Source: Neoechinorhynchus agilis (Eukaryota; Animalia; Acanthocephala). From it: 64,000 bases of DNA. The stretch is taken from positions 8,348,784 to 8,412,783 of the forward strand of contig CM121341.1 in assembly GCA_051530055.1 (NCBI GenBank). The letters are read 5' to 3'. Both the position numbers and the translations under genes were made by a program. How positions within the stretch are numbered: position 1 is the first letter of the stretch; every line of letters starts with the position of its first letter. Below, piece by piece: positions 1-61,628 of this stretch. The notes under the pieces are model-generated. The model was given only the letters and a program-made list of their open reading frames with translations, was not told where the DNA came from and searched no databases.

Positions 1-164
1 TTCGTACCTTCCTCTCTTCCGCTGCACCTCCATCGATTTCGAGAGAGCAGGGAATGCTGCTTACTGCGAGGGTGTCCACAGACGTTGCGTCCCAGAGAAA
101 GCATTTGCTCTCGCGCCACGGAAAGATCGAAATTCCGTCAGGTCGACGACCGGGGTATTCAAAC
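1..164 (-). mobile_element. CRE-clade non-LTR retrotransposon relic (RLE endonuclease region), runs off the window start
   Basis: My minus-strand translation reads FEYPGRRPDGISIFPWRESKCFLWDATSVDTLAVSSIP...GGAAEERKVR, the RPDG/PW/WDATxVDT signature also seen at 8959-9222. Confidence 0.85.
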
Positions 165-254
165 ATTCATCACTCTATCGCAAAGCTTTACATTTAAAAA
201 AAAGGAAATACACAAATAAACGACAGCTAAAACCCAAATTACAAATTTATTATT

Positions 255-1125
255 TCCTTTTTCAGTGTATAGCTAGTAGATCTTTCAATTTTAACGTTTG
301 GCGATAAAACGCAAATATCGTTCAAAATGTCCGGAGCAGTTCAAAAGAGGTTTTTGAATGAACGCATTCATGTAGATTTCGCTTATTTATTAAAGAAATA
401 TTTTAATCAATTTTCACGATCGGTAATAGATAACAATTATTGAAACCGTTCTCGCTCGCGTAGAGATCACTGCACCCGCCCTTTTAAATTTTGTGTTCGA
501 GATAAAAAAAGGGTCAAATAATACGCTAAAAAGTGCAATCACCACCGTCCGCAAAATTGGAGCTTCTCTCCTTCCTCGGCTGTCAGCAGCATTGCCGCGT
601 TGTACTGCGAGCGAGATATTTTGCCGCGTCGCCCGTCGTTTTTCTCAATTTCTTCGAGAGATCCTGGAGCAGAGTGAGTGTCGAGCAGCAAAGTGCTTCA
701 TTCGTCTCTCCTTGTGAATCCCTATATTTTCGTACCTTCCTCTCTTCCGCTGCACCTCCTTTTTCAGTGTATAGCTAGTAGATCTTTCAATTTTAACGTT
801 TGGCGATAAAACGCAAATATCGTTCAAAATGTCCGGAGCAGTTCAAAAGAGGTTTTTGAATGAACGCATTCATGTAGATTTCGCTTATTTATTAAAGAAA
901 TATTTTAATCAATTTTCACGATCGGTAATAGATAACAATTATTGAAACCGTTCTCGCTCGCGTAGAGATCACTGCACCCGCCCTTTTAAATTTTGTGTTC
1001 GAGATAAAAAAAGGGTCAAATAATACGCTAAAAAGTGCAATCACCACCGTCCGCAAAATTGGAGCTTCTCTCCTTCCTCGGCTGTCAGCAGCATTGCCGC
1101 GTTGTACTGCGAGCGAGATATTTTG
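255..1125. repeat. Tandem duplication, 502-bp period (255-623 = 757-1125); 729-759 also repeats 1-31
   Basis: Direct sequence identity; the duplicated 74/85-aa ORFs in the track reflect it. Confidence 0.95.
566..760 (-). mobile_element. 5'-truncated, internally deleted CRE 3' end
   Basis: Minus strand GGAAEERKVRKYRD...LLQDLSKKLRKTTGD..(frameshift)..ISLAVQRGNAADS matches the CRE C-terminal TGDxR...QRISxAVQRGNAA motif. Confidence 0.8.
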
Positions 1126-1210
1126 TCGCAGGAACCACTTCCGAGAAACGACTTTTCGTTCGATTTTAAAGCGTCCAAAGACGCAGCTCGACAAATTTTG
1201 GGACACGACA
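1068..1210 (-). mobile_element. CRE 3' end relic just upstream of RRP5
   Basis: ORF 916..1224 contains RKWFLRQNISLAVQRGNAADS. Confidence 0.8.
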
Positions 1211-16164: not shown

Positions 16165-19100
16165 GTTTATTTTTATTATATATTTATATATTTACATATT
16201 TATATTTATTTATCATGGTTTTAGAGCGCAATCGTGACTTATTTATCGAACAGATTAACGGTTTGGTGAGAGAATACCTGTCATGTTGTCCACCGCCCAA
16301 TTCTGGGTTCACAGAACTTCTTTAACTCTCCAGCCCTGGAAAATGGGAGGGAATCTAGGTGCTGGGTGAAGGCGTCTATAAAGGAGGCCTTATGTTCGGG
16401 GGCGACCTCTGGAAAAGAAGACAAGGCCGGGGATACACCAGGTTTTCCAAATAGCTTGCGCTTGTAACGAGTTCAGGCCTAGTTTCATCGCTCGGTTGGC
16501 CATTTTTTTGCCCACTTTTAGCAACCTTTTCAACTTATTGATATCGGTTCTGGGTGACAGATTGACCGTTAACCTATGTCCAAGAATGCGTAATTTTAGT
16601 GGAGTATTGGCATTATCCGCTCGCTTCTGATTCAAGGGGTTCATTAGATTGTTAAAAAAATGATTTGAGATCCCTTCGAAGTTTACCTGAGCGAACCTTG
16701 AAGATACAGAACGATTTGGAGGGATTGAGGGATAAATTCATACGAGGTAAGACTACATTGAGGTAGTGGATGCACTGCTCAATCAAACTTTTGAGTTTGA
16801 AAGCTCTGTGCGCAGAGAATACGAAAGTTAAGTCATCCGCATAACAGGTTATAGAAACATTACGGGTTTTGAAATTTTTAACTATATACTGCGAAGCAAG
16901 TAGAAACAGGATCGGGGAAAGCGGTGAACCTTGTGGGACACCCGTGGTCATGTAATAGGTTGATTTCGAAGCATCATCCTCGTAAAAGAAGGACTTGGTA
17001 AAAAGAATATTGTGAATTCGGGAGATCAAATTATGAGGGACGCTAAAAAATTCTAATATCTCCATAATAAAAGACAAAGATATCTTGTCGAACGCTTGAG
17101 ATAGATCAACAGCCATTATGGCTTTCAAGGGTAGATTGGTGTTAGTGAAGTTATCGTAAATATTGGTTAAAGCAGAGTGTACGGATTTCCCCCTTTTGAA
17201 AACCGTGGCAATTAGTCGATATGCAGCTATTTTCTGTTATAAAGGCTCTCAAGCGAAGTGCTAAGGCTCGTTCGTAAATGGTTACAAAGGGGTTCTGTAG
17301 GGAAATTGGGCGGAGATCCTTAGGCTGAGAGACTGACTTTTTCCCATTTTTAATAAGAAAAATACGCCGAGCCACATTAATCTCTCTCCAAGCATAAGGG
17401 GAGCAGTTCAGCATTAATTCGGCCAGCCTTAGGATGCAGTCCCGGGGAAGTAAAGTAAAGATTTTGGTGCCTGAGCTTGAGTTGGAGGATGCCAATTTCG
17501 GATTGTCGGACCATACTTTTAGGATGTCACTTAATAAAATATCTACACGACCGGCAATGACCCGTCGAAAGATTGTCACGGGTAAAGCATCCTTGACAGA
17601 GCCCTCTGAATGAAAAGCAAAAATGGTTCCCAAAATATCGTCTATAGACGTTGATTTTAACCAGCCGGAGATTTTCGATTTCCATGGTATGTATCTCTTC
17701 CTTTGAAAAGTGTGCCACCAATGTGAGGAAAAGGGTTTCAGGCTATTAAGAAGATTTGCTTTCTGTTGCATCCTCTGTCAACATTGGGCTGCCCAATAAT
17801 GACTAGATAAGATTTTCGTGAGAAGTACGTCTCCAGAACGTTTGGCCAGAAAAAGTTGGCGTCCGAGAAAGCGAAGAGAGCGACTTTCGTAAGGACGAGA
17901 GAAAACCTTTACCGTTCGAAACAGAAAGGTATTAGCAACCAAATTGAGGATGTTATTGACAGACGGTAAAATGGATGACCGATTAGATTGTAAGGTGCTC
18001 GAAGATAGAGCGATTTGGCTGATTAGACGGAAAAAGGCCACGTTGAGTGGAGAAATGTGATATGATTTGCGGAGTGCATTCATAGGACCGAATGACCAGA
18101 TAAGGATATCATGCCCTAGGAGGTCAAAGAGAGACACCTGACGATCGAATTGAATTGAAAAGTTAAGATATCTCTTAAAGATTATCAGATCTAAGAACGA
18201 GTGTGTATTTAAAACGAGATTGTGGAAAGACGGAGTATTCGGGAGGGTTAGAGAGTAAAGAGGTTTGACTGCGTTGACAATGGCTCTGGGCCATTTTAAA
18301 GATGGGTCGTTAAAATCCCCCACAACAAAGTCGATATTGGCATTGAGAAGCCATTTGATTTTGTTTTTGATATATGGACGATGAATAAAACCCGGTCTGA
18401 TGTACAAATTAACAATCGAGAGGTACTTCCGATTAAAGAGAAATTTAAAAAGTGAGTACGACATTTCCGGTGAGGTGTAGGAGGCTATAAGTTGGGGATT
18501 TAAGGAGGAATGAAAAATTGAAATAAGACCTTGTGAGGCGGGACTGAATGGGCCAGTAATAAAAGAGGAGAACATTGAACAGTTAAGATGAGGTAGATAG
18601 TTATAAAGTTGGTGTAGAGTGTGAATACTTTTCGTTTCCTGCAGTAGGATGATGGAAACGCCTGGTGTGAACCGAGCGAGCCTGGTAAGATTGGCCGCCC
18701 CTCCACAATTCCATTGCAGCACCCGGAGATCCCCACCATTACCTGTGCCTTCGAGTTATCATATTCTGGCGACTTCATCTGATATTAGGGCCGCAGTTCC
18801 GTTGTTAATGAGCGAGGATTGAGTGTTAATGATCCTGTTAACATATTCAGAGTCGGTTTCTTCGACTTCCATGACGACGTCCTCGATATCTGAGTGGTTT
18901 ATACTAGAATCGACATTGAGTTTCTTGGCCCCATGAGAGTTTTTTTCCGTCGCATTCGCTCTTTTTAGCTTTGCACCACGTTGACTAGGTAAACTCGATG
19001 AAATCAAATCAGGAAGATTGACCAAGTTCCCAATGAGTGTACTCAGCTTCCTCTCAAAAGCCACGATGGCCTCAGTGAAGCGCGCCTGCATGACCGTTAG

Positions 19101-39205: not shown

Positions 39206-40632
39206 CTGAGGAAGGAATTATCTTAGAGTCTGTTAGTTAATGCAACCTAGTTTCTCGGAGACGCGATAAAGTATTTATAGTCCGTTGGGAACGATGGCAG
39301 TGGTTTAGTAAACCAACGCCATGGAATTAGAACATATTAAAGGCCAGAAAAGCAAGTCGCTACGGGGCAATTAGCTTATAAGCGAATAATCGTTTACACA
39401 TTTTTATGAAGTATTTGAGACAAAATTTATTGCCATTTAATGAATCGAAAGGAGAAGATGAAAGCGATTCGCAAAACATCTACAAAAAAACACAACCTAG
39501 GTGCTATTTAGTGGATTCATTTCAATAGTCGATCAAAATAGGCAGCAAAATGTGTCTCGAATTTCTGTCATACAATTCGCATAATAATCCATTAGAAGTG
39601 CCAGAAAAGTTTATTTTTTAATTTAAAAATCACGGGTTATCATTCCAAAGCTCATTTAGACTTTGATTTTCGTACAAATAAACATTACAGTAACAGCAAG
39701 ATTATAAAGCATCAATTGTCCAACACAAAACTAATCAAAAAAGAGTAGTCGTATCCAATGACCCTTCGATATTTTTACCAGCGTATTTTAAGACCTCCAG
39801 CTTTAATCGATAAACAGTATAATTCGTTTAGTTCTTATCAGGACACGAGGAGGCAATATTCTTTTCTTTACAAGAGAGACAGAGTTGTCGTGGAGTGAAA
39901 GAGACAATGAATTCAGCATTGCATATAACACGTTCCTTGTCATCCGAACAGCTTTAATTTATTCGAATTGCATGCTTTTTAAATTAAGCCAAAAAATCAA
40001 ATAGATATTAAAGCCGATATTTTCTAATACTTATGGAGTAGAACCAATTTGGACTAGGATTTTAGAAGGTGTCTCAAGAGATCAATAAGAAAACCCCGCT
40101 TGCAAAATAAAACCAACTTTCTTTTTTATCTGGATAATTGAGAGGAAAACAATTTATTTGACTAACTTTTTTTGATTTCAATGACTACTTAATCGAATTA
40201 ATCTACTCGTTTTAATAGCCTAATTGGCACACGAGGACGATACTTTGGAACATGTTTGTGAATGTCAAGAAACTTTTCATAGAGGTTGAGTTTATAACCA
40301 CAGAGCGATTATTGCGAGGATTTCTGTTAGTTGTATTTTGAATGAACGTTACCAAATCTTAAAAATATAGATCTACTAAATCAACGAACGATGTAAACTC
40401 CTACGGATAGGTGAAATTAGGGCTTCTTTTGAGATTCCATTTGAGAGAATAATAAATCATACAAGTCTAACGTTGGCAAGAATTATCATGTTCAGATGAA
40501 CTATTCGCATCTCTTGCTAGATAATCTTTAAATAGTATTATTTGTTTAGAGGTTAGTTATATTCTTTGCCCTGCAGTGAATTTTGGGCGTGCTGGTCATT
40601 GTTTTTCGTAACGAATTAGTTTTTATCGGCTA

Positions 40633-40662
40633 TGTGGCGGTGGGGAAAATTATATATCAAAG
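40633..40662 (+). repeat. 30-bp direct repeat, left copy (candidate TSD)
   Basis: TGTGGCGGTGGGGAAAATTATATATCAAAG recurs exactly at 43242-43271. Confidence 0.9.
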
Positions 40663-40689
40663 GGCCACTTTAATTTTTTTAATCATAAC

Positions 40690-42712
40690 ATAATAAAGTA
40701 AAAAACGCGCAATCACCACCGTCCGCAAAATTGGAGCTTATTTTTCTAGGTTTTCCGAGAGGTGAAATATCGGGCAAATAAATTGGTGAATTTCGGACGA
40801 GAATTTAAAAGGTTAAACTAAAATGTTCCTTCTTTTCCTTAGTTTTGCCATTCGGATTTAAATTTTTTCACTTTTCCGATAATAAAGTACAAAACGTGCA
40901 ATCACCACCGTCCGCAAAATTGGAGCTTATTTTTCTAGGTTTTCCGAGAGGTGAAATATCGGGCAAATAAATTGGTGAATTTCGGACGAGAATTTAAAAG
41001 GTTAAACTAAAATGTTCCTTCTTTTCCTTAGTTTTGCCATTCGGATTTAAATTTTTTCACTTTTCCGATAATAAAGTACAAAACGCGCAATCACCACCGT
41101 CCGCAAAATTGGAGCTTATTTTTCTAGGTTTTCCGAGAGGTGAAATATCGGGCAAATAAATTGGTGAATTTCGGACGAGAATTTAAAAGGTTAAACTAAA
41201 ATGTTCCTTCTTTTCCTTAGTTTTGCCATTCGGATTTAAATTTTTTTCCCTTTAACTTTTCCGATAATAAAGTACAAAACGCGCAATCACCACCGTCCGC
41301 AAAATTGGAGCTTATTTTTCTAGGTTTTCCGAGAGGTGAAATATCGGGCAAATAAATTGGTGAATTTCGGACGAGAATTTAAAGGTTAAACTAAAATGTT
41401 CCTTCTTTTCCTTAGTTTTGCCATTCGGATTTAAATTTTCACTTTTCCGATAATAAAGTACAAAACGCGCAATCACCACCGTCCGCAAAATTGGAGCTTA
41501 TTTTTCTAGGTTTTCCGAGAGGTGAAATATCGGGCAAATAAATTGGTGAATTTCGGACGAGAATTTAAAAGGTTAAACTAAAATGTTCCTTCTTTTCCTT
41601 AGTTTTGCCATTCGGATTTAAATTTTTTTCCTTGATAGAAATGACTTTAACTTTTCCGATAATAAAGTACAAAACGCGCAATCACCACCGTCCGCAAAAT
41701 TGGAGCTTATTTTTCTAGGTTTTCCGAGAGGTGAAATATCGGGCAAATAAATTGGTGAATTTCGGACGAGAATTTAAAAGGTTAAACTAAAATGTTCCTT
41801 CTTTTCCTTAGTTTTGCCATTCGGATTTAAATTTTTTTCCTTGATAGAAATGACTTTAACTTTTCCGATAATAAAGTACAAAACGCGCAATCACCACCGT
41901 CCGCAAAATTGGAGCTTATTTTTCTAGGTTTTCCGAGAGGTGAAATATCGGGCAAATAAATTGGTGAATTTCGGACGAGAATTTAAAAGGTTAAACTAAA
42001 ATGTTCCTTCTTTTCCTTAGTTTTGCCATTCGGATTTAAATTTTTTAACTTTTCCGATAATAAAGTACAAAACGTGCAATCACCACCGTCCGCAAAATTG
42101 GAGCTTATTTTTCTAGGTTTTCCGAGAGGTGAAATATCGGGCAAATAAATTGGTGAATTTCGGACGAGAATTTAAAAGGTTAAACTAAAATGTTCCTTCT
42201 TTTCCTTAGTTTTGCCATTCGGATTTAAATTTTTTCACTTTTCCGATAATAAAGTATAAAACGCGCAATCACCACCGTCCGCAAAATTGGAGCTTATTTT
42301 TCTAGGTTTTCCGAGAGGTGAAATATCGGGCAAATAAATTGGTGAATTTCGGACGAGAATTTAAAAGGTTAAACTAAAATGTTCCTTCTTTTCCTTAGTT
42401 TTGCCATTCGGATTTAATTTTTTTCCTTGATAGAAATGACTTTAACTTTTCCGATAATAAAGTACAAAACGTGCAATCACCACCGTCCGCAAAATTGGAG
42501 CTTATTTTTCTAGGTTTTCCGAGAGGTGAAATATCGGGCAAATAAATTGGTGAATTTCGGACGAGAATTTAAAAGGTTAAACTAAAATGTTCCTTCTTTT
42601 CCTTAGTTTTGCCATTCGGATTTAAATTTTTTTCCTTGATAGAAATGACTTTAACTTTCCCGATAATAAAGTACAAAACGCGCAATCACCACCGTCCGCA
42701 AAATTGGAGCTT
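40690..42712. repeat. Satellite A: 10 full units (186-209 bp, mainly 189 and ~209) plus the start of an 11th
   Basis: AATCACC anchor at 40711, 40900, 41089, 41285, 41471, 41680, 41889, 42078, 42267, 42475, 42684. Confidence 0.97.
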
Positions 42713-42960
42713 CTCTCCTTCCTCGGCTGTCAGCAGCATTGCCTCGTTGTACTGCGAGCGAGATACTTTGTCACAGGAATACACCTGCTCGTGAGTTAGA
42801 AATATTTCGTCCAATCGCACTGCTGATTTTCAGTCTGAACTCGACGAAGAAATTCCTTTGGCAAAATAACTCTTAGTTACAACAAAAAGTAGATTCTATG
42901 TTCAAGGAAGGCATAAAAATCTTAAAGTGCGAACTTCGACGTATATTTTTTGGGATCACA
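42713..42960 (-). mobile_element. CRE 3'-end relic fused to satellite A
   Basis: Minus strand SRAGVFL*QSISLAVQRGNAADS; 42682-42770 matches 535-623 with 2 mismatches in 89 bp. Homology beyond ~42830 is weak. Confidence 0.8.
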
Positions 42961-43241
42961 CAAGTCAATCAGCTTCACTTCTTTTCTGCGATAATTTGAT
43001 ATATATTTTAATAAATAAGGAAGCGAAAATTTGTTAAACGTACTTTCTCAAATAGCATTTTTCGCTGACTTGTGTTATCGAAAAATTTATAAACAAATGA
43101 AAAAATTAGATATTGTGCGAATAAAACACTTTAACAATGACTGAAGAGGCGAGGATACCTCGCGAAATATTTCGAATAAATAAAATATGTAATGACCGGG
43201 ATTATTCTCACTGAAAGTGTAATTTTGTAATTATTGCTTTG

Positions 43242-43271
43242 TGTGGCGGTGGGGAAAATTATATATCAAAG
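43242..43271 (+). repeat. 30-bp direct repeat, right copy
   Basis: Exact match to 40633-40662. Confidence 0.9.
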
Positions 43272-43620
43272 ACTGATTGAAATATTTCGTATAAACGCAC
43301 TGGCCTTCTTCGATCAATTATCTGAAAAGGAATTTGGCAACCTCAATGTCTTATCCGGCGGTATCCTCAACTTTAGGGAATAATCTGTCTTGTTACTCTC
43401 GGAAGTATTGGTTCCCTGAATGAACATGATCGGCTTCCATTTGTGAGAGAATCTTGGAGATGATAACGTACTTTTGAACGATACTTTTAAAGACAAAGCA
43501 CGAAATCTCTTTTGGTTCTTAACGCTTCTAATTTATTTTGAACTAAAAAATGCTCACAATCTTGGATCTTATAAATTTTCGCTAATACATAGAACATGAA
43601 AAAAAGTGTGTTCCAATCAT

Positions 43621-44151
43621 TCACTTTTCACTGTTTTCCAAAAGATCCTCGACGAGTACTGATTTCTTAGCCAGATCTTTGACCAGTCCTATCAAATGAG
43701 CATCAGCTTCCAAAAGTGTGATATCTTTCGACGCTCCTAAGAAGCGAGCTGACATTTCAAAATCTTTCAACTTGATAACAACTCGTGAGCCGATACTGAC
43801 ATCTAATCCTCGTCGCTTGCCTCCTTTGTTATCCTCGGACGAATCATTGTCAACCCTTAAATGACATGTACAATGGAACTTCCCTCCAAAATCCACATAG
43901 ACATCCGTGCCATCGACAATATCAATCACTGTGCCATAGAGTCGTCTATGTTTTATGCCGCCCAGTTGAACGAGCTTTGAATGTCGAAATAAGCGAGCGA
44001 ATGTCCGAAGATCTTGCTCATAAGTCTCAATATCTAGTTCGGTTTTTTCAACGGCATTATCCACAGTCGTTTGAATTAAACGAACCGTTTGAATTGGCTT
44101 TAGATGACGTAGGAACAAAAAGGATGGAAATCTTGAAATCAATGATGGCAT
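43621..44151 (-). CDS. MRPS28: Mitochondrial ribosomal protein S28 (bS1m), intronless, 176 aa
   Basis: FARLFRHSKLVQLG...VYVDFGGKFHCTC...SARFLGASKDITLLEADA matches the animal MRPS28 pattern; N-terminus looks like a targeting peptide. Confidence 0.92.
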   Translation of the reverse strand: MPSLISRFPSFLFLRHLKPIQTVRLIQTTVDNAVEKTELDIETYEQDLRTFARLFRHSKLVQLGGIKHRRLYGTVIDIVDGTDVYVDFGGKFHCTCHLRVDNDSSEDNKGGKRRGLDVSIGSRVVIKLKDFEMSARFLGASKDITLLEADAHLIGLVKDLAKKSVLVEDLLENSEK

Positions 44152-46491: not shown

Positions 46492-49400
46492 ATGAACAAT
46501 GAAGCTGATGATTTGGAAGATTCCTATGAACTTGTTTTATACTCTCCGCACTGCCTATCCGCTGATGTGGTCGCTCGTGTAATGGAAAAGATGCGTTATT
46601 TTACAGCTTATGATGATCTCAAGATCATTTTAAATTTGTTACAAGTTCGCGACATTCATCTAGCTTATGATATCCTTGATTTATCGACAAAGGATATAAA
46701 CGAGCAAGACGTTGAGGATCGATGGCAATGTATCCTGTTTCATCCGGTGATTTGTCAACAAATCATGTATCAAATCAATAATTTGCCTGCTGCGGTGATC
46801 GAAGCCTGTCGGAGGCAAGCTCCTTTTAGTGATGAAGAGGAAACAATGATCGCTTCTATAAATTCGGTATTTCTTTTATCGAGACGAATTTGAGCGATTT
46901 AACACAATTTTGTCTCATTATAGAGAGTCCGTGGAGATTTGCAATTCTTTGCTGAAGTATTAAAATCAAGACCGAGACTGTTCATCTTCCGTTCAGCAAG
47001 GGATCTTATGTATCATTGGAGAATGATGAAAACAAATTATCTTTTGGATGATCAAGCTGGTTAGTTCTTTAACCTTTTCTCCGTGATTCAGCGCATTAAG
47101 GCATATCGTGTTTTTTTCTAGTGTTCTAAAGTGAATTTTTCGAAAGCAAATAAAAAATCATCGATTTGTTTTTTTACTCTTTTGCGAAATATGCAATCTT
47201 TAATCCGGACGACCTTAAAAACTTAGTTTCCCCTTTTTCTTCGTATACGACAGTGCAAAAGAATTTATTATTAAAAAAATTCTTAAAAAAATTGTGGTGG
47301 CGATACATATTTTATTGATATGATGAAATGTTTCCAGTCATTGTTTGGAAGTGAAGGAAACGAAGCTCCCGAAATATCTTGAATAAAATATGTGTTTTAT
47401 CCGCGAGGAGGGAAGGATTATGGCTACATCTTCAACTCTATCAACCTCAAATGATTTTATCTTTACGATACCTCCCCTCCAACGTATTTTATTCAAGATA
47501 TTTCGCGACTAAGCCTCGCTTTATCAGTCATCCAGAAAAAGTTTTAGTTGTTATATCTCGTACTCAAAAAATTATTTTCCGTCTGAAGACTTCTAAACGA
47601 TAATCCTATCTAGAATACAATAATCTTTACGATACCGGAATTATGGTGATGATGGTCATAATTCCTTCTCCTCCAACATATTTTATTCAAGATATTTCGC
47701 GACTAAGCCTGCTTTATCAGTCATCTAGAAAAAGTTTTAGTTATTATATCCGTACTAAAAAATTATTTTCCGTCTAAGACTTCTAACGATAATCCTATCT
47801 AGAATACAATAATCTTTACGATACCGGAATTTGGGATGATGGTCATAATTCCTTCCCCTCCAACTATTTTATTCAAGATATTTCGCGACTAAGCCTGCTT
47901 TATCAGTCATCTAGAAAAAGTTTTAGTTATTATATCCCGTACTAAAAAATTATTTTCCGTCTGAAGACTTCTAAACGATAATCCTATCTAGAATACAATA
48001 ATCTTTACGATACCGGAATTGTGGGATGATGGTCATAATTCCTTCCCTCCAACATTTTATTCAAGATATTTCGCGACTAAGCCTGCTTTATCAGTCATCT
48101 AGAAAAAGTTTTAGTTATTATATCCCGAGCCGTACTTAAAAAATTATTTTCCGTCTAAGACTTCTAAACGATAATCCTATCTAGAATACAATAATCTTTA
48201 CGATACCGGAATTGTGGTGATGATGGTCATAATTCCTTCCCCTCCAACATATTTTATTCAAGATATTTCGCGACTAAGCCTTGCTTTATCAGTCATCTAG
48301 AAAAAGTTTTAGTTATTATATCCCGAGCCGTACTTAAAAAAATTATTTTCCGTCGAAGACTTCTAAACGATAATCCTATCTAGAATACAATAATCTTTAC
48401 GATACCGGAATTGTGGCGATGATGGTCATAATTCCTTCCCCTCCAACGTATTTTATTCAAGATATTTCGCGACTAAGCCTCGCTTTATCAGTCATCTAGA
48501 AAAAGTTTTAGTTATTATATCCCGAGCCGTACTTAAAAAAATTATTTTCCGTCTGAAGACTTCTAAACGATAATCCTATCTAGAATAAAATATGTCTCCA
48601 ATTCTGAAGATTGAATTATTCATGTTTGTAAATGGCGGAAAATTGAAGGAATTTTATTTTTATCCGTCTCGTCGGATTTCTTCAGATTTTCTTATAAGTT
48701 TTTTCAATTGTGTTTGACATTGAAAAAACTTTCAAGCAATCTGAAGAAGGACGAAATATATTGTTTGCCAAACAAAGTATAGTCTTAAATCGTAAGAAAC
48801 TTACAAGAAATGACAAAGGTTGGGAAAATGTCGGAATACTTCGACGTGAAATAAATCATATCGGTTAATTTAAATCCCGCCCTGGGGTGTGTGGCGAAAC
48901 TAAGAAAACAGAAAGTATTTCATAATTTTTTATTCCTTTCGATTTCCAATAGAAAAACGAGCTCAAATACTGAAAGCAGTAAATGATGTTGACAAATCTG
49001 ACCTAATAGCTAACGATTATGATCAAGGTTTTAATTGGTTGATATTTTTTAAAACTTAACAAAGTGTCTCATAAAGATTTGGTTGCTACTTACGAAATTG
49101 TTCAACTGGAGTTTGATTTAATGATACAGGCATTTCCGGAATTTGACAAATACTTTGAATGCGTTGGAGTGCTAGCAATTCTGACTGCGTCCAATGGTAC
49201 TCAATTTCGAATGAAAGGGCCGAAGGTTTTTTTTGTTAAACCTAATCATGATCAATACAAAATTGTTTTAGATCACAATTGGTCGTAATCTAGTGAGCAT
49301 GACAGGCGATTCCACTCATATGGACGTGGACTTGGGCCTCATGGACGCATCAAAACGAACATCTAGGAACCAAGGTTTTATCGAATTTGACAAGACTCAA

Positions 49401-56880: not shown

Positions 56881-57242
56881 GGACTCAGCGGATATTTAAG
56901 TGATTTTTATTTCTCTCTCTCTTTTAGTACTCAAAGAATCTGTTATAGGTCACAGGTTTTTTCTTTAATTGGGTTTTTTTGTTCGTTAAAAAATTGAAGT
57001 CTTTTATTTCAAAGATTTGAAGCGGATAACATCAGTCGGAAAAGTTTGTCAAGAAAGGCATCTTTCTCGCTTATTCTTTTACAAGACCCAAATGTTTTAT
57101 GGAATAATTCGTCCTTAAATTTAACCTTTCTGCTCTATGTTCTTGTTAGTTAATTGTTTCACTGAATTTTATTTACGATCAGCCTTTATTTTAATCTTTT
57201 CGATTCCTTTTGGACCCACAAAATATTTAATTTTTTGTTATA

Positions 57243-60200
57243 CCGGTGAAAAATTAAAGGAATTTTATTAAATCCGCTAAATTTGGAAGGCACGAGATTG
57301 TACGCCTTTTTATTAGAGGTTTTTTATACAAATTTTGTTTTCCTTTGACTTTCTGAGTTCCTTTAGAAGATCTTTGTTTGAAGATTAAATTATTCAATAG
57401 TTGTTTATGCCGGTGAAAAATTAAAGGAATTTTATTAAATCCGCTAAATTTGGAAGGCACGAGATTGTACGCCTTTTTATTAGAGGTTTTTTATACAAAT
57501 TTTGTTTTCCTTTGACTTTCTGAGTTCCTTTAGAAGATCTTTGTTTGAAGATTAAATTATTCAATAGTTGTTTATGCCGGTGAAAAATTAAAGGAATTTT
57601 ATTAAATCCGCTAAATTTGGAAGGCACGAGATTGTACGCCTTTTTATTAGAGGTTTTTTATACAAATTTTGTTTTCCTTTGACTTTCTGAGTTCCTTTAG
57701 AAGATCTTTGTTTGAAGATTAAATTATTCAATAGTTGTTTATGCCGGTGAAAAATTAAAGGAATTTTATTAAATCCGCTAAATTTGGAAGGCACGAGATT
57801 GTACGCCTTTTTATTAGAGGTTTTTTATACAAATTTTGTTTTCCTTTGACTTTCTGAGTTCCTTTAGAAGATCTTTGTTTGAAGATTAAATTATTCAATA
57901 GTTGTTTATGCCGGTGAAAAATTAAAGGAATTTTATTAAATCCGCTAAATTTGGAAGGCACGAGATTGTACGCCTTTTTATTAGAGGTTTTTATACAAAT
58001 TTTGTTTTCCTTTGACTTTCTGAGTTCCTTTAGAAGATCTTTGTTTGAAGATTAAATTATTCAATAGTTGTTTATGCCGGTGAAAAATTAAAGGAATTTT
58101 ATTAAATCCGCTAAATTTGGAAGGCACGAGATTGTACGCCTTTTTATTAGAGGTTTTTTATACAAATTTTGTTTTCCTTTGACTTTCTGAGTTCCTTTAG
58201 AAGATCTTTGTTTGAAGATTAAATTATTCAATAGTTGTTTATGCCGGTGAAAAATTAAAGGAATTTTATTAAATCCGCTAAATTTGGAAGGCACGAGATT
58301 GTACGCCTTTTTATTAGAGGTTTTTTATACAAATTTTGTTTTCCTTTGACTTTCTGAGTTCCTTTAGAAGATCTTTGTTTGAAGATTAAATTATTCAATA
58401 GTTGTTTATGCCGGTGAAAAATTAAAGGAATTTTATTAAATCCGCTAAATTTGGAAGGCACGAGATTGTACGCCTTTTTATTAGAGGTTTTTTATACAAA
58501 TTTTTTCCTTTGATTTTCTGAGTTCCTTTAGAAGATCTTTGTTTGAAGATTAAATTATTCAATAGTTGTTTATGCCGGTGAAAAATTAAAGGAATTTTAT
58601 TAAATCCGCTAAATTTGGAAGGCACGAGATTGTACGCCTTTTTATTAGAGGTTTTTTATACAAATTTTGTTTTCCTTTGACTTTCTGAGTTCCTTTAGAA
58701 GATCTTTGTTTGAAGATTAAATTATTCAATAGTTGTTTATGCCGGTGAAAAATTAAAGGAATTTTATTAAATCCGCTAAATTTGGAAGGCACGAGATTGT
58801 ACGCCTTTTATTAGAGGTTTTTTATACAAATTTTTTCCTTTGACTTTCTGAGTTCCTTTAGAAGATCTTTGTTTGAAGATTAAATTATTCAATAGTTGTT
58901 TATGCCGGTGAAAAATTAAAGGAATTTTATTAAATCCGCTAAATTTGGAAGGCACGAGATTGTACGCCTTTTTATTAGAGGTTTTTTATACAAATTTTTT
59001 CCTTTGATTTTCTGAGTCCTTTAGAAGATCTTTGTTTGAAGATTAAATTATTCAATAGTTGTTTATGCCGGTGAAAAATTAAAGGAATTTTATTAAATCC
59101 GCTAAATTTGGAAGGCACGAGATTGTACGCCTTTTTATTAGAGGTTTTTTATACAAATTTTGTTTTCCTTTGACTTTCTGTTCCTTTAGAAGATCTTTGT
59201 TTGAAGATTAAATTATTCAATAGTTGTTTATGCCGGTGAAAAATTAAAGGAATTTTATTAAATCCGCTAAATTTGGAAGGCACGAGATTGTACGCCTTTT
59301 TATTAGAGGTTTTTTATACAAATTTTTTCCTTTGACTTTCTGAGTTCCTTTAGAAGATCTTTGTTTGAAGATTAAATTATTCAATAGTTGTTTATGCCGG
59401 TGAAAAATTAAAGGAATTTTATTAAATCCACTTAATTTGGAAGGCACGAGATTGTACGCCTTTTTATTAGAGGTTTTTTATACAAATTTTGTTTTCCTTT
59501 GACTTTCTGAGTTCCTTTAGAAGATCTTTGTTTGAAGATTAAATTATTCAATAGTTGTTTATGCCGGTGAAAAATTAAAGGAATTTTATTAAATCCGCTA
59601 AATTTGGAAGGCACGAGATTGTACGCCTTTTTATTAGAGATCTTTGTTTGAAGATTAAATTATTCAATAGTTGTTTATGCCGGTGAAAAATTAAAGGAAT
59701 TTTATTAAATCCACTAAATTTGGAAGGCACGAGATTGTACGCCTTTTATTAGAGGTTTTTTATACAAATTTTTTCCTTTGACTTTCTGAGTTCCTTTAGA
59801 AGATCTTTGTTTGAAGATTAAATTATTCAATAGTTGTTTATGCCGGTGAAAAATTAAAGGAATTTTATTAAATCCGCTAAATTTGGAAGGCACGAGATTG
59901 TACGCCTTTTTATTAGAGGTTTTTTATACAAATTTTTTCCTTTGACTTTCTGAGTTCCTTTAGAAGATCTTTGTTTGAAGATTAAATTATTCAATAGTTG
60001 TTTATGCCGGTGAAAAATTAAAGGAATTTTATTAAATCCACTAAATTTGGAAGGCACGAGATTGTACGCCTTTTATTAGAGGTTTTTTATACAAATTTTT
60101 TTCCTTTGACTTTCTGAGTTCCTTTAGAAGATCTTTGTTTGAAGATTAAATTATTCAATAGTTGTTTATGCCGGTGAAAAATTAAAGGAATTTTATTAAA

Positions 60201-60970
60201 TCCGCTAAATTTGGAAGGCACGAGATTGTACGCCTTTTTATTAGAGGTTTTTTATACAAATTTTGTTTTCCTTTGACTTTCTGAGTTCCTTTAGAAGATC
60301 TTTGTTTGAAGATTAAATTATTCAATAGTTGTTTATGCTGAAAAATTAAAGGAATTTTATTAAATCCGCTAAATTTGGAAGGCACGAGATTGTACGCCTT
60401 TTTATTAGAGGTTTTTTATACAAATTTTTTCCTTTGACTTTCTGAGTTCCTTTAGAAGATCTTTGTTTGAAGATTAAATTATTCAATAGTTGTTTATGCC
60501 GGTGAAAAATTAAAGGAATTTTATTAAATCCACTTAATTTGGAAGGCACGAGATTGTACGCCTTTTTATTAGAGGTTTTTTATACAAATTTTGTTTTCCT
60601 TTGACTTTCTGAGTTCCTTTAGAAGATCTTTGTTTGAAGATTAAATTATTCAATAGTTGTTTATGCCGGTGAAAAATTAAAGGAATTTTATTAAATCCGC
60701 TAAATTTGGAAGGCACGAGATTGTACGCCTTTTTATTAGAGGTTTTTTATACAAATTTTGTTTTCCTTTGACTTTCTGAGTTCCTTTAGAAGATCTTTGT
60801 TTGAAGATTAAATTATTCAATAGTTGTTTATGCCGGTGAAAAATTAAAGGAATTTTATTAAATCCGCTTAATTTGGAAGGCACGAGATTGTACGCCTTTT
60901 TATTAGAGGTTTTTTATACAAATTTTTTCCTTTGACTTTCTGAGTTCCTTTAGAAGATCTTTGTTTGTTG
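57243..60970. repeat. Satellite C: 167-bp unit, about 22-23 copies, one internally deleted near 59637
   Basis: 167-bp spacing of the repeated 68-aa ORFs; direct inspection. Confidence 0.98.
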
Positions 60971-61628
60971 ATTAAATTGCCTCGGTAATCAATCGGATTT
61001 AATAAAATTCCTTATAACGCTGTATAAGATCTTTAGAAAATGAACGCGACACACTTAAAGGGAGCTGGATGGTCGCTGTTAAAAGGGATCCGAAATTATC
61101 TGAGCCAAATATTTAGTCCAACTGTTCATTTACATTGCTCCTTGGATTTTCCGTATCAAATTATGGAATATGTAAGAAAATCGAATCGTATAAGTCGTTT
61201 TTTAAATGAAGACATCATCAAACCTTGTAGAATATCGATTATTAAAATATTTCGGGATATAAAAAGGGCCGTTCGGCATGTTTAAACGATTATTTCAAAA
61301 TGTTGATATGTGAGCTACGTGGGTATATTGATTTTAGGATTATTATTTTGAAGTCTTGACAAGTTTTGCGAACCTCGTGTCGGATCCATCATCTCAGTTT
61401 GTTAGTATTGAAATCGTCTATTACTAACAAACTGATGATGATGACGACGAACCCTAGGAAGTTCATAGAACGTCTTTTTAATCGAAAAACTATTTACCTT
61501 GCGAATGGTCGACCATCAATATCGTCGCGCGCGCGAATTGAGTGTTCATTTTTGATGATTTTCGTCGATTGAAATATCGCATCCGGATGAGCATTTTGCC
61601 CATTGTCTCTCTCTCACTTTTTGCAGGT

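Follow-up and report, generated by a model that had tools for sequence, protein, structure and literature searches.

Does an exact 30-bp direct repeat on both sides of a retroelement end mark the target-site duplication (TSD) of a single insertion? The question arises at a locus of the acanthocephalan Neoechinorhynchus agilis, within a window of 64,000 nucleotides (the whole stretch of DNA that we analyzed). The 30-mer TGTGGCGGTGGGGAAAATTATATATCAAAG is found there in two exact copies, at 40633-40662 and 43242-43271, which start 2609 bp apart. An earlier note on this DNA had correctly reported this pair and had taken the 2.58-kb block between the copies for one insertion mobilized by a CRE-clade retrotransposon, with the 30-mers as its TSD. 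We propose instead that the locus consists of nested transposable elements rather than a single insertion, and that a satellite with units of the form A-X was amplified locally within the split first copy of a DNA element, MITE-A. We estimate the probability of this reading at roughly 0.78.

The local repetition of the 30-mer is far beyond chance, yet the 30-mer is not unique sequence. The exact 30-mer is confined to this locus, and the genome contains 19 matches to it with three mismatches or less (versus 0 for a reversed control). The earlier note had considered that it might be a common dispersed repeat, and it is one: it corresponds to positions 1-30 of MITE-A, our name for a dispersed, TA-flanked DNA element with long terminal inverted repeats (TIRs). 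The 187-bp unit of MITE-A has more than 40 genomic copies, which align from position 1 to near position 187 at 80-85% identity. Inverted pairs of this unit, 450-1060 bp apart, were found as well, and both ends are present in L005, L007, and L008, which are palindromic. In alignment A1, a TA stands before six of the eight family ends, including that of copy 1 at this locus. With TIRs, many dispersed copies, and TA flanks, MITE-A has the features of a TA-flanked DNA transposon or MITE. It resembles Tc1/mariner-like and Stowaway-like elements in its TA flanks, conserved outer termini, short palindromic derivatives, and inverted pairs; it differs from TA-flanked MITEs and long-TIR transposons in that no transposase-bearing parent was identified and in that many of the 187-bp units are solo. 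A right-hand inverted MITE-A end was not found elsewhere in the window.

On the left side of the block, MITE-A does not stop where the 30-mer stops. Copy 1 (plus strand) follows a TA dinucleotide at 40631-40632, as seen in alignment A1, and its positions 1-43 are at 40633-40675: the left 30-mer plus GGCCACTTTAATT. This extension of 13 bases (40663-40675) continues MITE-A, and in alignment A1 the sequence past the 30-mer, CACTTTAATT, is in register with the family. In a BLAST comparison with L005, which is a complete copy, query positions 19-63 cover 40631-40675 (88.9% identity), and query positions 64-100 match 42799-42835 (plus strand), which are MITE-A positions 44-80. Query positions 63 and 64 are contiguous in L005; the same halves are 2123 bp apart at this locus. 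The unsplit junction, CTTTAATT followed directly by GAAATATTTCG (MITE-A positions 43 and 44), occurs 167 times in the genome; in other words, at least 167 MITE-A copies in the 46-Mb genome read straight through the insertion site and represent paralogous "empty sites." Beyond about position 80, where copy 1 would run into a low-copy repeat, the similarity was not above that of shuffled controls. These comparisons show that copy 1 was cut between positions 43 and 44, with no target sequence lost.

The right 30-mer begins copy 2, a complete 187-bp long-TIR unit (43242-43428, plus strand), which is a different variant of MITE-A. It lacks CTTTAA, a 6-bp deletion after position 30 that is common to five other loci, and besides this indel it has 6 further differences from copy 1 within positions 31-67. 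The two bases before copy 2 are TG, not TA. If the 30-mers were a TSD, then the insert should be foreign and its removal should leave a continuous target; here, both 40663-40675 and 42799-42835 are in-register MITE-A sequence. On the evidence of these alignments, the 30-mers are the outer ends of two MITE-A copies in direct orientation, and not a TSD. They could be mistaken for one because the outer 30 bp of the two copies are identical. As a point against two separate copies, the next 37 bp after the identical 30-mers contain 6 substitutions and one indel (Fisher p = 0.014); the tips may owe their identity to gene conversion, a template-switching duplication, or another event at the locus.

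The sequence that was actually inserted is a shorter segment, about 40676-42798, within copy 1. The idea of a single insertion holds up for this segment, which includes the retroelement end and the tandem array and lies cleanly inside another element, but it does not hold for the whole block, because the 30-mers belong to two MITE-A copies and because 42821-43241 consists of two unrelated repeats. One of these is a low-copy repeat (42821-43114, plus strand, resuming at 43221-43241), which matches four other loci at 93%, 84%, 84%, and 74% identity; these other copies lie in a paralogous gene-family context. The other is one arm of an abundant palindromic MITE, MITE-B, which is inserted in the low-copy repeat (43115-43226). 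MITE-B had 798 candidates in a first look, and many of its matches are inverted pairs with 93-99% identity. Between copy 1 and copy 2, then, there is the low-copy repeat and one MITE-B arm, and neither is related to the retroelement. The low-copy repeat's downstream flank was not found elsewhere in the window. The earlier note had reported about 280 bp of unknown sequence here: there is such a stretch, but its extent is 42799-43241 (about 440 bp), and the repeats that compose it can be identified. Direct reading of the 5' junction of the insertion (42797-42798) revealed extra bases, TAACT (42794-42798), and no recognizable TSD. There were no matches to known RNA families (Rfam, E up to 1) across 40000-44000.

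What kind of retroelement is it? The LINE whose end is present here encodes a zinc finger, a reverse transcriptase (RT; RVT_1, E = 4e-16), and a CCHC...RH...RPD...D block, which appears in the frame-2 translation as CRCG..H..C, RHSEIN, and RRPDG..WD. There was no sign of an APE domain: Exo_endo_phos did not match even at E up to 10. The only PDB relatives of the RT segment are R2 proteins (E = 3e-5 to 1e-3). The endonuclease block has a weak in-register match to the endonuclease region of R2Bm (E = 0.32), and in Pfam, PDB, and the Atlas, the endonuclease segment matched unnamed eukaryotic clusters and, weakly, R2, but nothing else. The arrangement of an RT followed by CCHC and a PD-(D/E)xK-like endonuclease, with no APE, is that of elements with a restriction-like endonuclease (RLE), the R2/CRE/NeSL/R4 group, and we classify the LINE by its predicted protein as an RLE-type, R2-like non-LTR retrotransposon.

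With the CRE clade specifically, the LINE has both common features and differences. Like members of the CRE clade (SLACS, CZAR, CRE1, and CRE2), the LINE has a single ORF with an N-terminal zinc finger, RT, and a C-terminal restriction-like endonuclease (PMC12278014). CRE elements occupy a fixed, single position in spliced-leader genes (PMC5814959). In contrast, copies of the LINE are scattered through unrelated DNA, and ten of them have mutually unrelated 3' flanks, which is not the pattern of site-specific insertion into spliced-leader genes. TSD size varies among CRE-clade elements (PMC12278014). Unlike in that clade, the one clear TSD among the 16 copies of the LINE that we examined is 12 bp, and none of the 16 has a match of 20 bp or more, so long TSDs, which had been expected as a family trait, are absent from these copies. 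Frequent severe 5' truncation and imprecise junctions are shared with R2-type RLE LINEs, but unlike R2, the LINE does not have an rDNA target, and it has hundreds of candidate dispersed copies (668 in a first look with a 995-bp piece of its body).

At this locus, two parts of the LINE flank the array, both on the minus strand. The first is a relic of its ORF (42713-42796), the last 26 codons or so, which is contiguous with the first copy of the LINE's terminal 50-mer; other copies of the LINE share this 50-mer. By BLAST, the relic is 84.8% identical to the L056 element over 42796-42663. Compared with ten other copies, it has decayed, with an in-frame stop (CGA to TGA) and an 11-nt deletion. 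A C-terminal relic of a retroelement had been claimed and is present, but the homology to the LINE upstream of the first 50-mer extends for only about 80 bp. The second part is the A-rich 3' tail GTTATGATTAAAAA (40676-40689), which is a natural tail: it also follows TTATTAT in the LINE copies L033, L034, L035, and L040. Two more A's, at 40674-40675, could belong either to this tail or to MITE-A. The retroelement 3' end with an A-rich tail, as first described, is thus real, although as an RLE-type non-LTR element.

Between the relic and the tail is a tandem array with the structure (A-X)x10-A (40690-42712, minus strand). We delimited it by repeat spacing, by a search for the 50-mer, and by TRF, which reported the same array, 40690-42712, with periods of 189 and 209. 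The spacings of the ten units are 189, 189, 196, 186, 209, 209, 189, 189, and 208, which bears out the earlier description of ten units of 186-209 bp. In minus-strand reading, the array finishes with ...TACTTTATTATGTTATGATTAAAAAAATTAAAGTGGCC, immediately ahead of the left 30-mer. Segment A is the 50-bp 3' end of the LINE, which comprises its last 8 codons, the stop codon, and the 3' UTR. A occurs 11 times, with minus-strand starts at 42712, 42503, 42295, 42106, 41917, 41708, 41499, 41313, 41117, 40928, and 40739. What had been described as a 31-bp motif lies within this 50-mer, and the proposed link between the retroelement end and the satellite stands, in that every unit contains the terminal 50 bp.

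Segment X is 136-159 bp long and combines a LINE tail of a second type, 115 bp of a hairpin satellite whose unit is 239 bp (91-97% identity over the 115 bp), and the remaining 11-15 bp. The 239-bp satellite that X matches is 147 kb away. In that related array, the only other one related to the units, we found no LINE sequence, contrary to the suggestion that each satellite array would have its own LINE junction. The tail in the internal units, CGGAAAAGT..AAAAA, resembles a natural variant of the LINE's tail, TGTAAAAG(G/T)AAAAA, and the tail of the last unit is the other natural type. Genome searches found both the A-to-X junction (TTATTAT followed by CGGAAAAGT) and the X-to-A junction (CCTAGAAAAAT followed by AAGCTCC) at this locus only, and searching the assembly with both junctions did not identify a donor A-X array or even a single A-X unit elsewhere. 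The units are 97.9-100% identical (mean 99.2%), and a 189-bp GCG/GCA dimer occurs twice in the array. Ten head-to-tail, near-identical units, each with a LINE end, are what is expected of a satellite derived from a transposable element. A nascent 502-bp duplication is present at the start of the window.

How might these parts have come together? We infer an order of events from a single haplotype of one assembly. The sequence shows two MITE-A copies in the same orientation, 2.6 kb apart, with copy 1 split by a short, 5'-truncated RLE-type LINE that has about 80 bp of the ORF end, the terminal segment A, and a tail rich in A. Another LINE end of 50 bp would have inserted into a unit of the hairpin satellite. 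Because the 50-mer would be common to both LINE ends, they could have recombined there, by ectopic conversion or template switching, to give ORF-A-X-A-tail. This recombination step is without an observed partner, since no donor A-X was found in the assembly. Unequal exchange between the A repeats could then have amplified A-X to ten near-identical units.

The most probable of the alternatives to this history, though still unlikely, is that 40676-42798 arrived in one step: it would have been reverse-transcribed from one chimeric RNA and inserted into copy 1 by target-primed reverse transcription, with the RNA coming from a LINE copy with the array in its 3' region or from read-through into such an array. 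The segment does have the shape of a normal 5'-truncated LINE insertion, with the ORF and a natural tail at its opposite ends; the target was split cleanly with nothing lost; and other LINE 3' ends in the window are likewise involved in tandem duplication. If true, the entry of the ORF end, ten units, and the tail as a single cDNA would directly exemplify the dispersal of a satellite by a LINE. However, there is no source copy, both unit junctions being unique to the locus, and the tail types differ between the internal units and the last unit. Also, the double occurrence of the 189-bp dimer suggests exchange at the level of DNA. Finally, the units are 98-100% identical and the adjoining ORF relic has decayed (the stop and the 11-nt deletion), which suggests that the array was amplified or homogenized after insertion. 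In contrast, the original proposal, that all 2579 bp (40663-43241) are one retroelement insertion into a single MITE-A with a 30-bp TSD, is the least probable reading of all. In its favor, the direct repeat is exact and its precise sequence is unique to the locus, the LINE's tail adjoins the left 30-mer, and TSD size is variable in CRE-clade elements (PMC12278014). But the first bases of the insert would have to be MITE-A positions 31-43, with positions 44-80 in register 2.1 kb further on; the TSD would have to start exactly on the transposon's first base; the right 30-mer is part of a different MITE-A variant; the block includes about 440 bp of unrelated repeats that have paralogues of their own; and none of the 16 LINE copies examined has a long TSD.

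The two MITE-A ends might also not be independent. It seems unlikely, but template-switching repair could have partly duplicated one resident MITE-A by copying positions 1-80, taking some 420 bp of filler from a low-copy-repeat paralogue, and restarting at position 1, with the LINE inserting afterwards. This would account for the derived bases common to both copies (CG at 6-7 and G at 62), for their identical first 30 bp, for the lack of a TA flank at copy 2, and for filler junctions that fall in short similarities (TG..TTCAGTC at 42821-42835 and TGT at 43240-43244). On the other hand, positions 31-67 contain 6 substitutions between the copies as well as the CTTTAA indel, whose state is common to other loci, and TCAC versus TGAC is a variant within the family. 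A restart exactly on the element's first base would be a coincidence, and paralogues have TA exactly where copy 2 begins, which fits a normal insertion. Mis-assembly of the array length or of the repeat joins is very unlikely. At least five repeat families are nested in the region, and the draft described in PMC12690905, which may not be this genome, came from pooled worms and a hybrid assembler; but the junctions are consistent, with the split MITE-A in exact register, the LINE's ORF contiguous with the first 50-mer and its tail with the last, and the unit variants are ordered rather than random.

Returning to local amplification within copy 1, it has precedents: satellites derive from transposable elements via tandem dimers and unequal exchange, and hobo has expanded to about 16 copies (McGurk and Barbash 2018, PMC5932611). 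As in the cases in PMC5932611, the substrate is a pair of directly oriented fragments of a transposable element (A...A), and as with hobo, the result is a local array, here of about 10 near-identical units. Unlike those cases, the spacer between the element ends is 115 bp of an unrelated hairpin satellite and not duplicated target, and the unit holds only 50 bp of the LINE and its tail. Double insertion at one site (PMC5932611) is insufficient on its own to explain the A-X-A seed. Overall, the array adds a new case to a known class, that of locally amplified satellites derived from transposable elements, and it is not a new mechanism.

The locus also carries a caution: when an exact direct repeat surrounds a retroelement end, the repeats can be the conserved tips of two copies of a DNA transposon, and paralogous copies of the host repeat can be used as empty sites to distinguish such tips from a TSD. 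What it offers is a young chimeric satellite that is clean and can be dated: a 50-bp LINE tail joined to a piece of hairpin satellite, within a precisely defined insertion. Together, the array and the 502-bp duplication suggest that, in this small parasite genome, tandem repeats start again and again from the 3' ends of RLE-type LINEs. A broader and less probable idea, allied to one-step arrival, is that the LINE's 3' end may set off tandem duplication repeatedly here because read-through RNAs could re-insert by homology beside their source.

An exact 30-bp direct repeat, TGTGGCGGTGGGGAAAATTATATATCAAAG, does bracket the block: a repeat search of the window placed it at 40633-40662 and 43242-43271. 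The earlier note took it for the target-site duplication (TSD) of a single CRE-mobilised insertion, but the 30-mer itself belongs to a common dispersed repeat. A pattern search of the whole assembly (46.2 Mb; its three large contigs measure 19.4, 16.4, and 7.8 Mb, and the others are small) found 19 matches with up to 3 mismatches, versus 0 for the reversed control; the exact form is confined to this locus. In BLAST of the flanks against six of these loci, homology was confined to the stretch inward of the right 30-mer, about another 157 bp. A genome search with 43242-43440 yielded over 40 copies (80-85% identity), almost all running from the first base of the 30-mer to about base 187. Several of these 187-bp copies form inverted pairs, 450-1060 bp apart, and the 30-mer lies at both ends of short palindromic derivatives (L005, L007, and L008). 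TA precedes 6 of the 8 ends in our alignment of the family (A1), including the left window copy. Judged from its sequence, this family (MITE-A) is a dispersed element that has TA flanks and long terminal inverted repeats; the 30-mer corresponds to its positions 1-30.

The left copy runs past its 30-mer as GGCCACTTTAATT (40663-40675), where the family consensus in the same alignment is AATCACTTTAATT. The next bases of the family, GAATATTTCG... (full form, GAAATATTTCGTCCAATCACACTG), are found again at 42799-42822, where 23 of the 24 bases agree. With L005, a complete copy of MITE-A, as the BLAST query, positions 19-63 match 40631-40675 and positions 64-100 match 42799-42835; neighbours in L005 are thus separated by 2123 bp here. 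The genome has 167 instances of the unbroken junction, ...CTTTAATT followed directly by GAAATATTTCG, versus 0 for the control, and these copies are paralogous empty sites. The right copy is without CTTTAA after position 30, a variant common to 5 other loci, and six more positions within 31-67 distinguish it from the left copy. Because the left copy continues beyond the 30-mer and resumes in register, and the right copy is a different variant, each 30-mer is the tip of its own MITE-A copy, and the two copies have the same orientation.

The block is therefore not a single insertion with a 30-bp TSD: MITE-A positions 1-43 and 44-80 flank a smaller insert, which lies at about 40676-42798, within MITE-A copy 1. 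All target bases were kept at this insertion, which has no recognisable TSD; about 5 bases at its 5' junction (TAACT) have no clear source. We rejected the TSD model, which needs three coincidences: the insert starting with MITE-A positions 31-43, the same insert carrying positions 44-80 in register, and the duplication beginning precisely at the first base of the transposon.

The rest of the block is also composite. At 42821-43114 is a low-copy repeat that matches four other loci, at 93, 84, 84, and 74% identity; the flanks of those loci are paralogous among themselves but not to the window. The repeat is followed by a single arm (43115-43226) of MITE-B, a palindromic and very abundant element (798 candidates at first look, many of them inverted pairs), and by a second part of the low-copy repeat (43221-43241), which matches the exact point where the paralogues go on past their matching end. 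For 42823-43000, similarity to the inner part of MITE-A was no higher than for shuffled controls. The four other loci of the low-copy repeat lie directly upstream of conserved exon-like sequence from a small paralogous gene family, and at one of them (L013) the repeat has an internal inverted duplication. Elsewhere in the window, a 199-bp tandem array (47473-48592, 5.8 copies) is weakly similar (77-80%) to the MITE-B arm.

The two 30-mers are identical, versus seven events in the next 37 bp (Fisher p = 0.014). The transposase-binding tip may be better conserved among source elements, or local gene conversion may have acted. Alternatively, one MITE-A end may have been duplicated by template switching, with filler DNA, which would account for the absence of TA at copy 2 and for short similarities at both filler junctions. 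We consider this duplication improbable: the paralogues carry TA where copy 2 (43242-43428) starts and the window now has TG, and this TA is as expected if copy 2 arrived by ordinary insertion. None of the three explanations restores a retroelement TSD.

On the minus strand, a stretch that resembles a retroelement ORF end comes before the array, and GTTATGATTAAAAAAATTAAAGTGGCC and then the left 30-mer come after it. The 50-bp motif of the array (A), AAGCTCCAATTTTGCGGACGGTGGTGATTGCGCGTTTTGTACTTTATTAT, is also the end of other dispersed copies of a LINE. All 10 copies inspected in detail are 5'-truncated, as is typical for non-LTR elements. At first look, 668 candidate copies in the genome matched a 995-bp piece of the body; long copies span some 2.9 kb. 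In one of these, L056, the translated frame has an N-terminal zinc finger (CPVC...H), a reverse transcriptase (RVT_1, E = 4e-16 in another copy, L054), and a C-terminal block (CRCGSLVDALGRHGLVC ... RHSEIN ... RRPDG ... WD) that is a restriction-like endonuclease (RLE) signature. The ORF terminus, ...EEGEKLQFCGRW and a stop codon, lies within the 50-mer. No APE domain was found, even with E up to 10. The reverse transcriptase segment matched only R2 proteins in PDB (E = 3e-5 to 1e-3), and the endonuclease segment gave a weak in-register alignment to R2Bm residues 933-999 (E = 0.32). Given the endonuclease signature, the lack of an APE domain, and the R2 relatives in PDB, we classify the element, from its predicted protein, as an RLE-type LINE. 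The CRE clade targets the spliced leader (PMC5814959, PMC12278014), but this family does not have that target. Homology to the ORF end in the insert is limited to 42796-42713 (84.8% identity), a relic with a CGA-to-TGA stop and an 11-nt deletion. The LINE copy at L054 adjoins the pol region of an LTR retrotransposon (L054 2162-5927), with zinc knuckle, aspartyl protease, reverse transcriptase, RNase H, and integrase. A decayed ORF run at 16652-18722 (minus strand), with a weak match to Exo_endo_phos (E = 0.005), is probably an APE-type LINE, distinct from the RLE family.

The earlier note also named long TSDs as a trait of the CRE clade. For 16 LINE copies, we aligned 85 bp about the 5' boundary to 85 bp about the 3' end, with shuffles as controls, and also ran an exact-match version. 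Only L036 had a clear TSD (TCATCAGAAAGT, 12 bp); a 12-mer in L044 is ambiguous and overlaps the tail, and none of the 16 had a match near 20-30 bp. The TSD of SLACS is 49 bp. In trypanosomatid CRE elements, TSDs can be long and are reported to vary in size (PMC12278014), but this feature does not carry over to this family.

The ten tandem units of 186-209 bp were confirmed by the repeat search and by TRF. A 32-nt core of the motif occurs 11 times in the array and at 532-563 and 1034-1065 (chance expectation, none). Cut at each 50-mer, in the LINE's direction, the units are 209, 208, 189, 189, 209, 209, 186, 196, 189, and 189 bp, followed by an eleventh 50-mer with a tail. They are 97.9-100% identical (mean, 99.2%), and the differences are mostly nested deletions of a 20-bp stretch directly after the 50-mer. 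A 189-bp dimer with alternating GCGCG/GCACG is present twice, as expected from unequal exchange. Each 136- to 159-bp spacer between 50-mers (X) includes 115 bp that match, at 91-97% identity, a 239-bp satellite located 147 kb from the array (G000:C1:8241581-8242931, or L031 1332-2677; 5.7 copies). The satellite unit is a near-perfect palindrome of about 175 bp plus a 64-bp spacer, and X contains this spacer and the first 45 bp or so of the left arm. This satellite, whose own array contains no LINE sequence, is the source family for whatever in the 189/209-bp units does not come from the LINE. X begins with 14-20 nt, CGGAAAAGT(G/T)AAAAAA, that are similar to a natural variant of the LINE tail, TGTAAAAG(G/T)AAAAA, found in L037 and three further loci. 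The last 50-mer has the other natural tail, GTTATGATTAAAAA, as in the loci L033-L035 and L040. The A-to-X and X-to-A junctions occur ten times each in the array and nowhere else in the assembly. A separate region, 57238-60978, holds long arrays with periods of 164-167 bp and higher-order periods of 279, 446, and 500 bp; it is very AT rich, with strong GC skew.

An ORF end, ten A-X units, a final A, and a tail were cleanly inserted into MITE-A copy 1, and the unit, which combines two LINE tails with hairpin satellite, has a single origin and is highly homogeneous. In the history that we rate as most likely, MITE-A copy 1 would have received a normal LINE insertion, short and 5'-truncated (about 145 bp), and another LINE end, of 50 bp and with the other type of tail, would have entered a unit of the hairpin satellite. 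Recombination of both through the shared 50-mer, by ectopic conversion or by template switching of a reverse transcriptase or polymerase, would have given A-X-A, and the array would then have grown in place by unequal exchange between A repeats. This expansion is the same as the route from transposon dimers to satellites described by McGurk and Barbash (PMC5932611). The weak point is the recombination, as no surviving donor unit for A-X is found in the assembly. In the chief competing explanation, a single chimeric RNA was the template from which the full 2.1 kb was reverse-transcribed. We rate this as unlikely, because its source copy is absent, the array is far more homogeneous than the adjoining decayed ORF relic, and the tails are of two different types.

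Three pieces of the same LINE family lie at 1-1150 (minus strand). There, 255-554 is identical to 757-1056 (period, 502), and an exact 31-mer of LINE ORF sequence occurs at 1-31 and 729-759. A unit of the LINE 3' end and about 300 bp of downstream flank was duplicated once, exactly. This second instance in the window resembles an incipient tandem repeat, its unit edged by a LINE tail.

Overall, the idea of a retroelement that carries or seeds a satellite holds in part: a LINE tail belongs to a young satellite, with the 50-mer in every unit, but the 30-bp TSD and the single insertion do not stand. If the whole insert did come from a single RNA, the retroelement-carried satellite would be kept. 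The event is of an ordinary kind, a tandem repeat derived from transposable elements, in an unusually clean setting.
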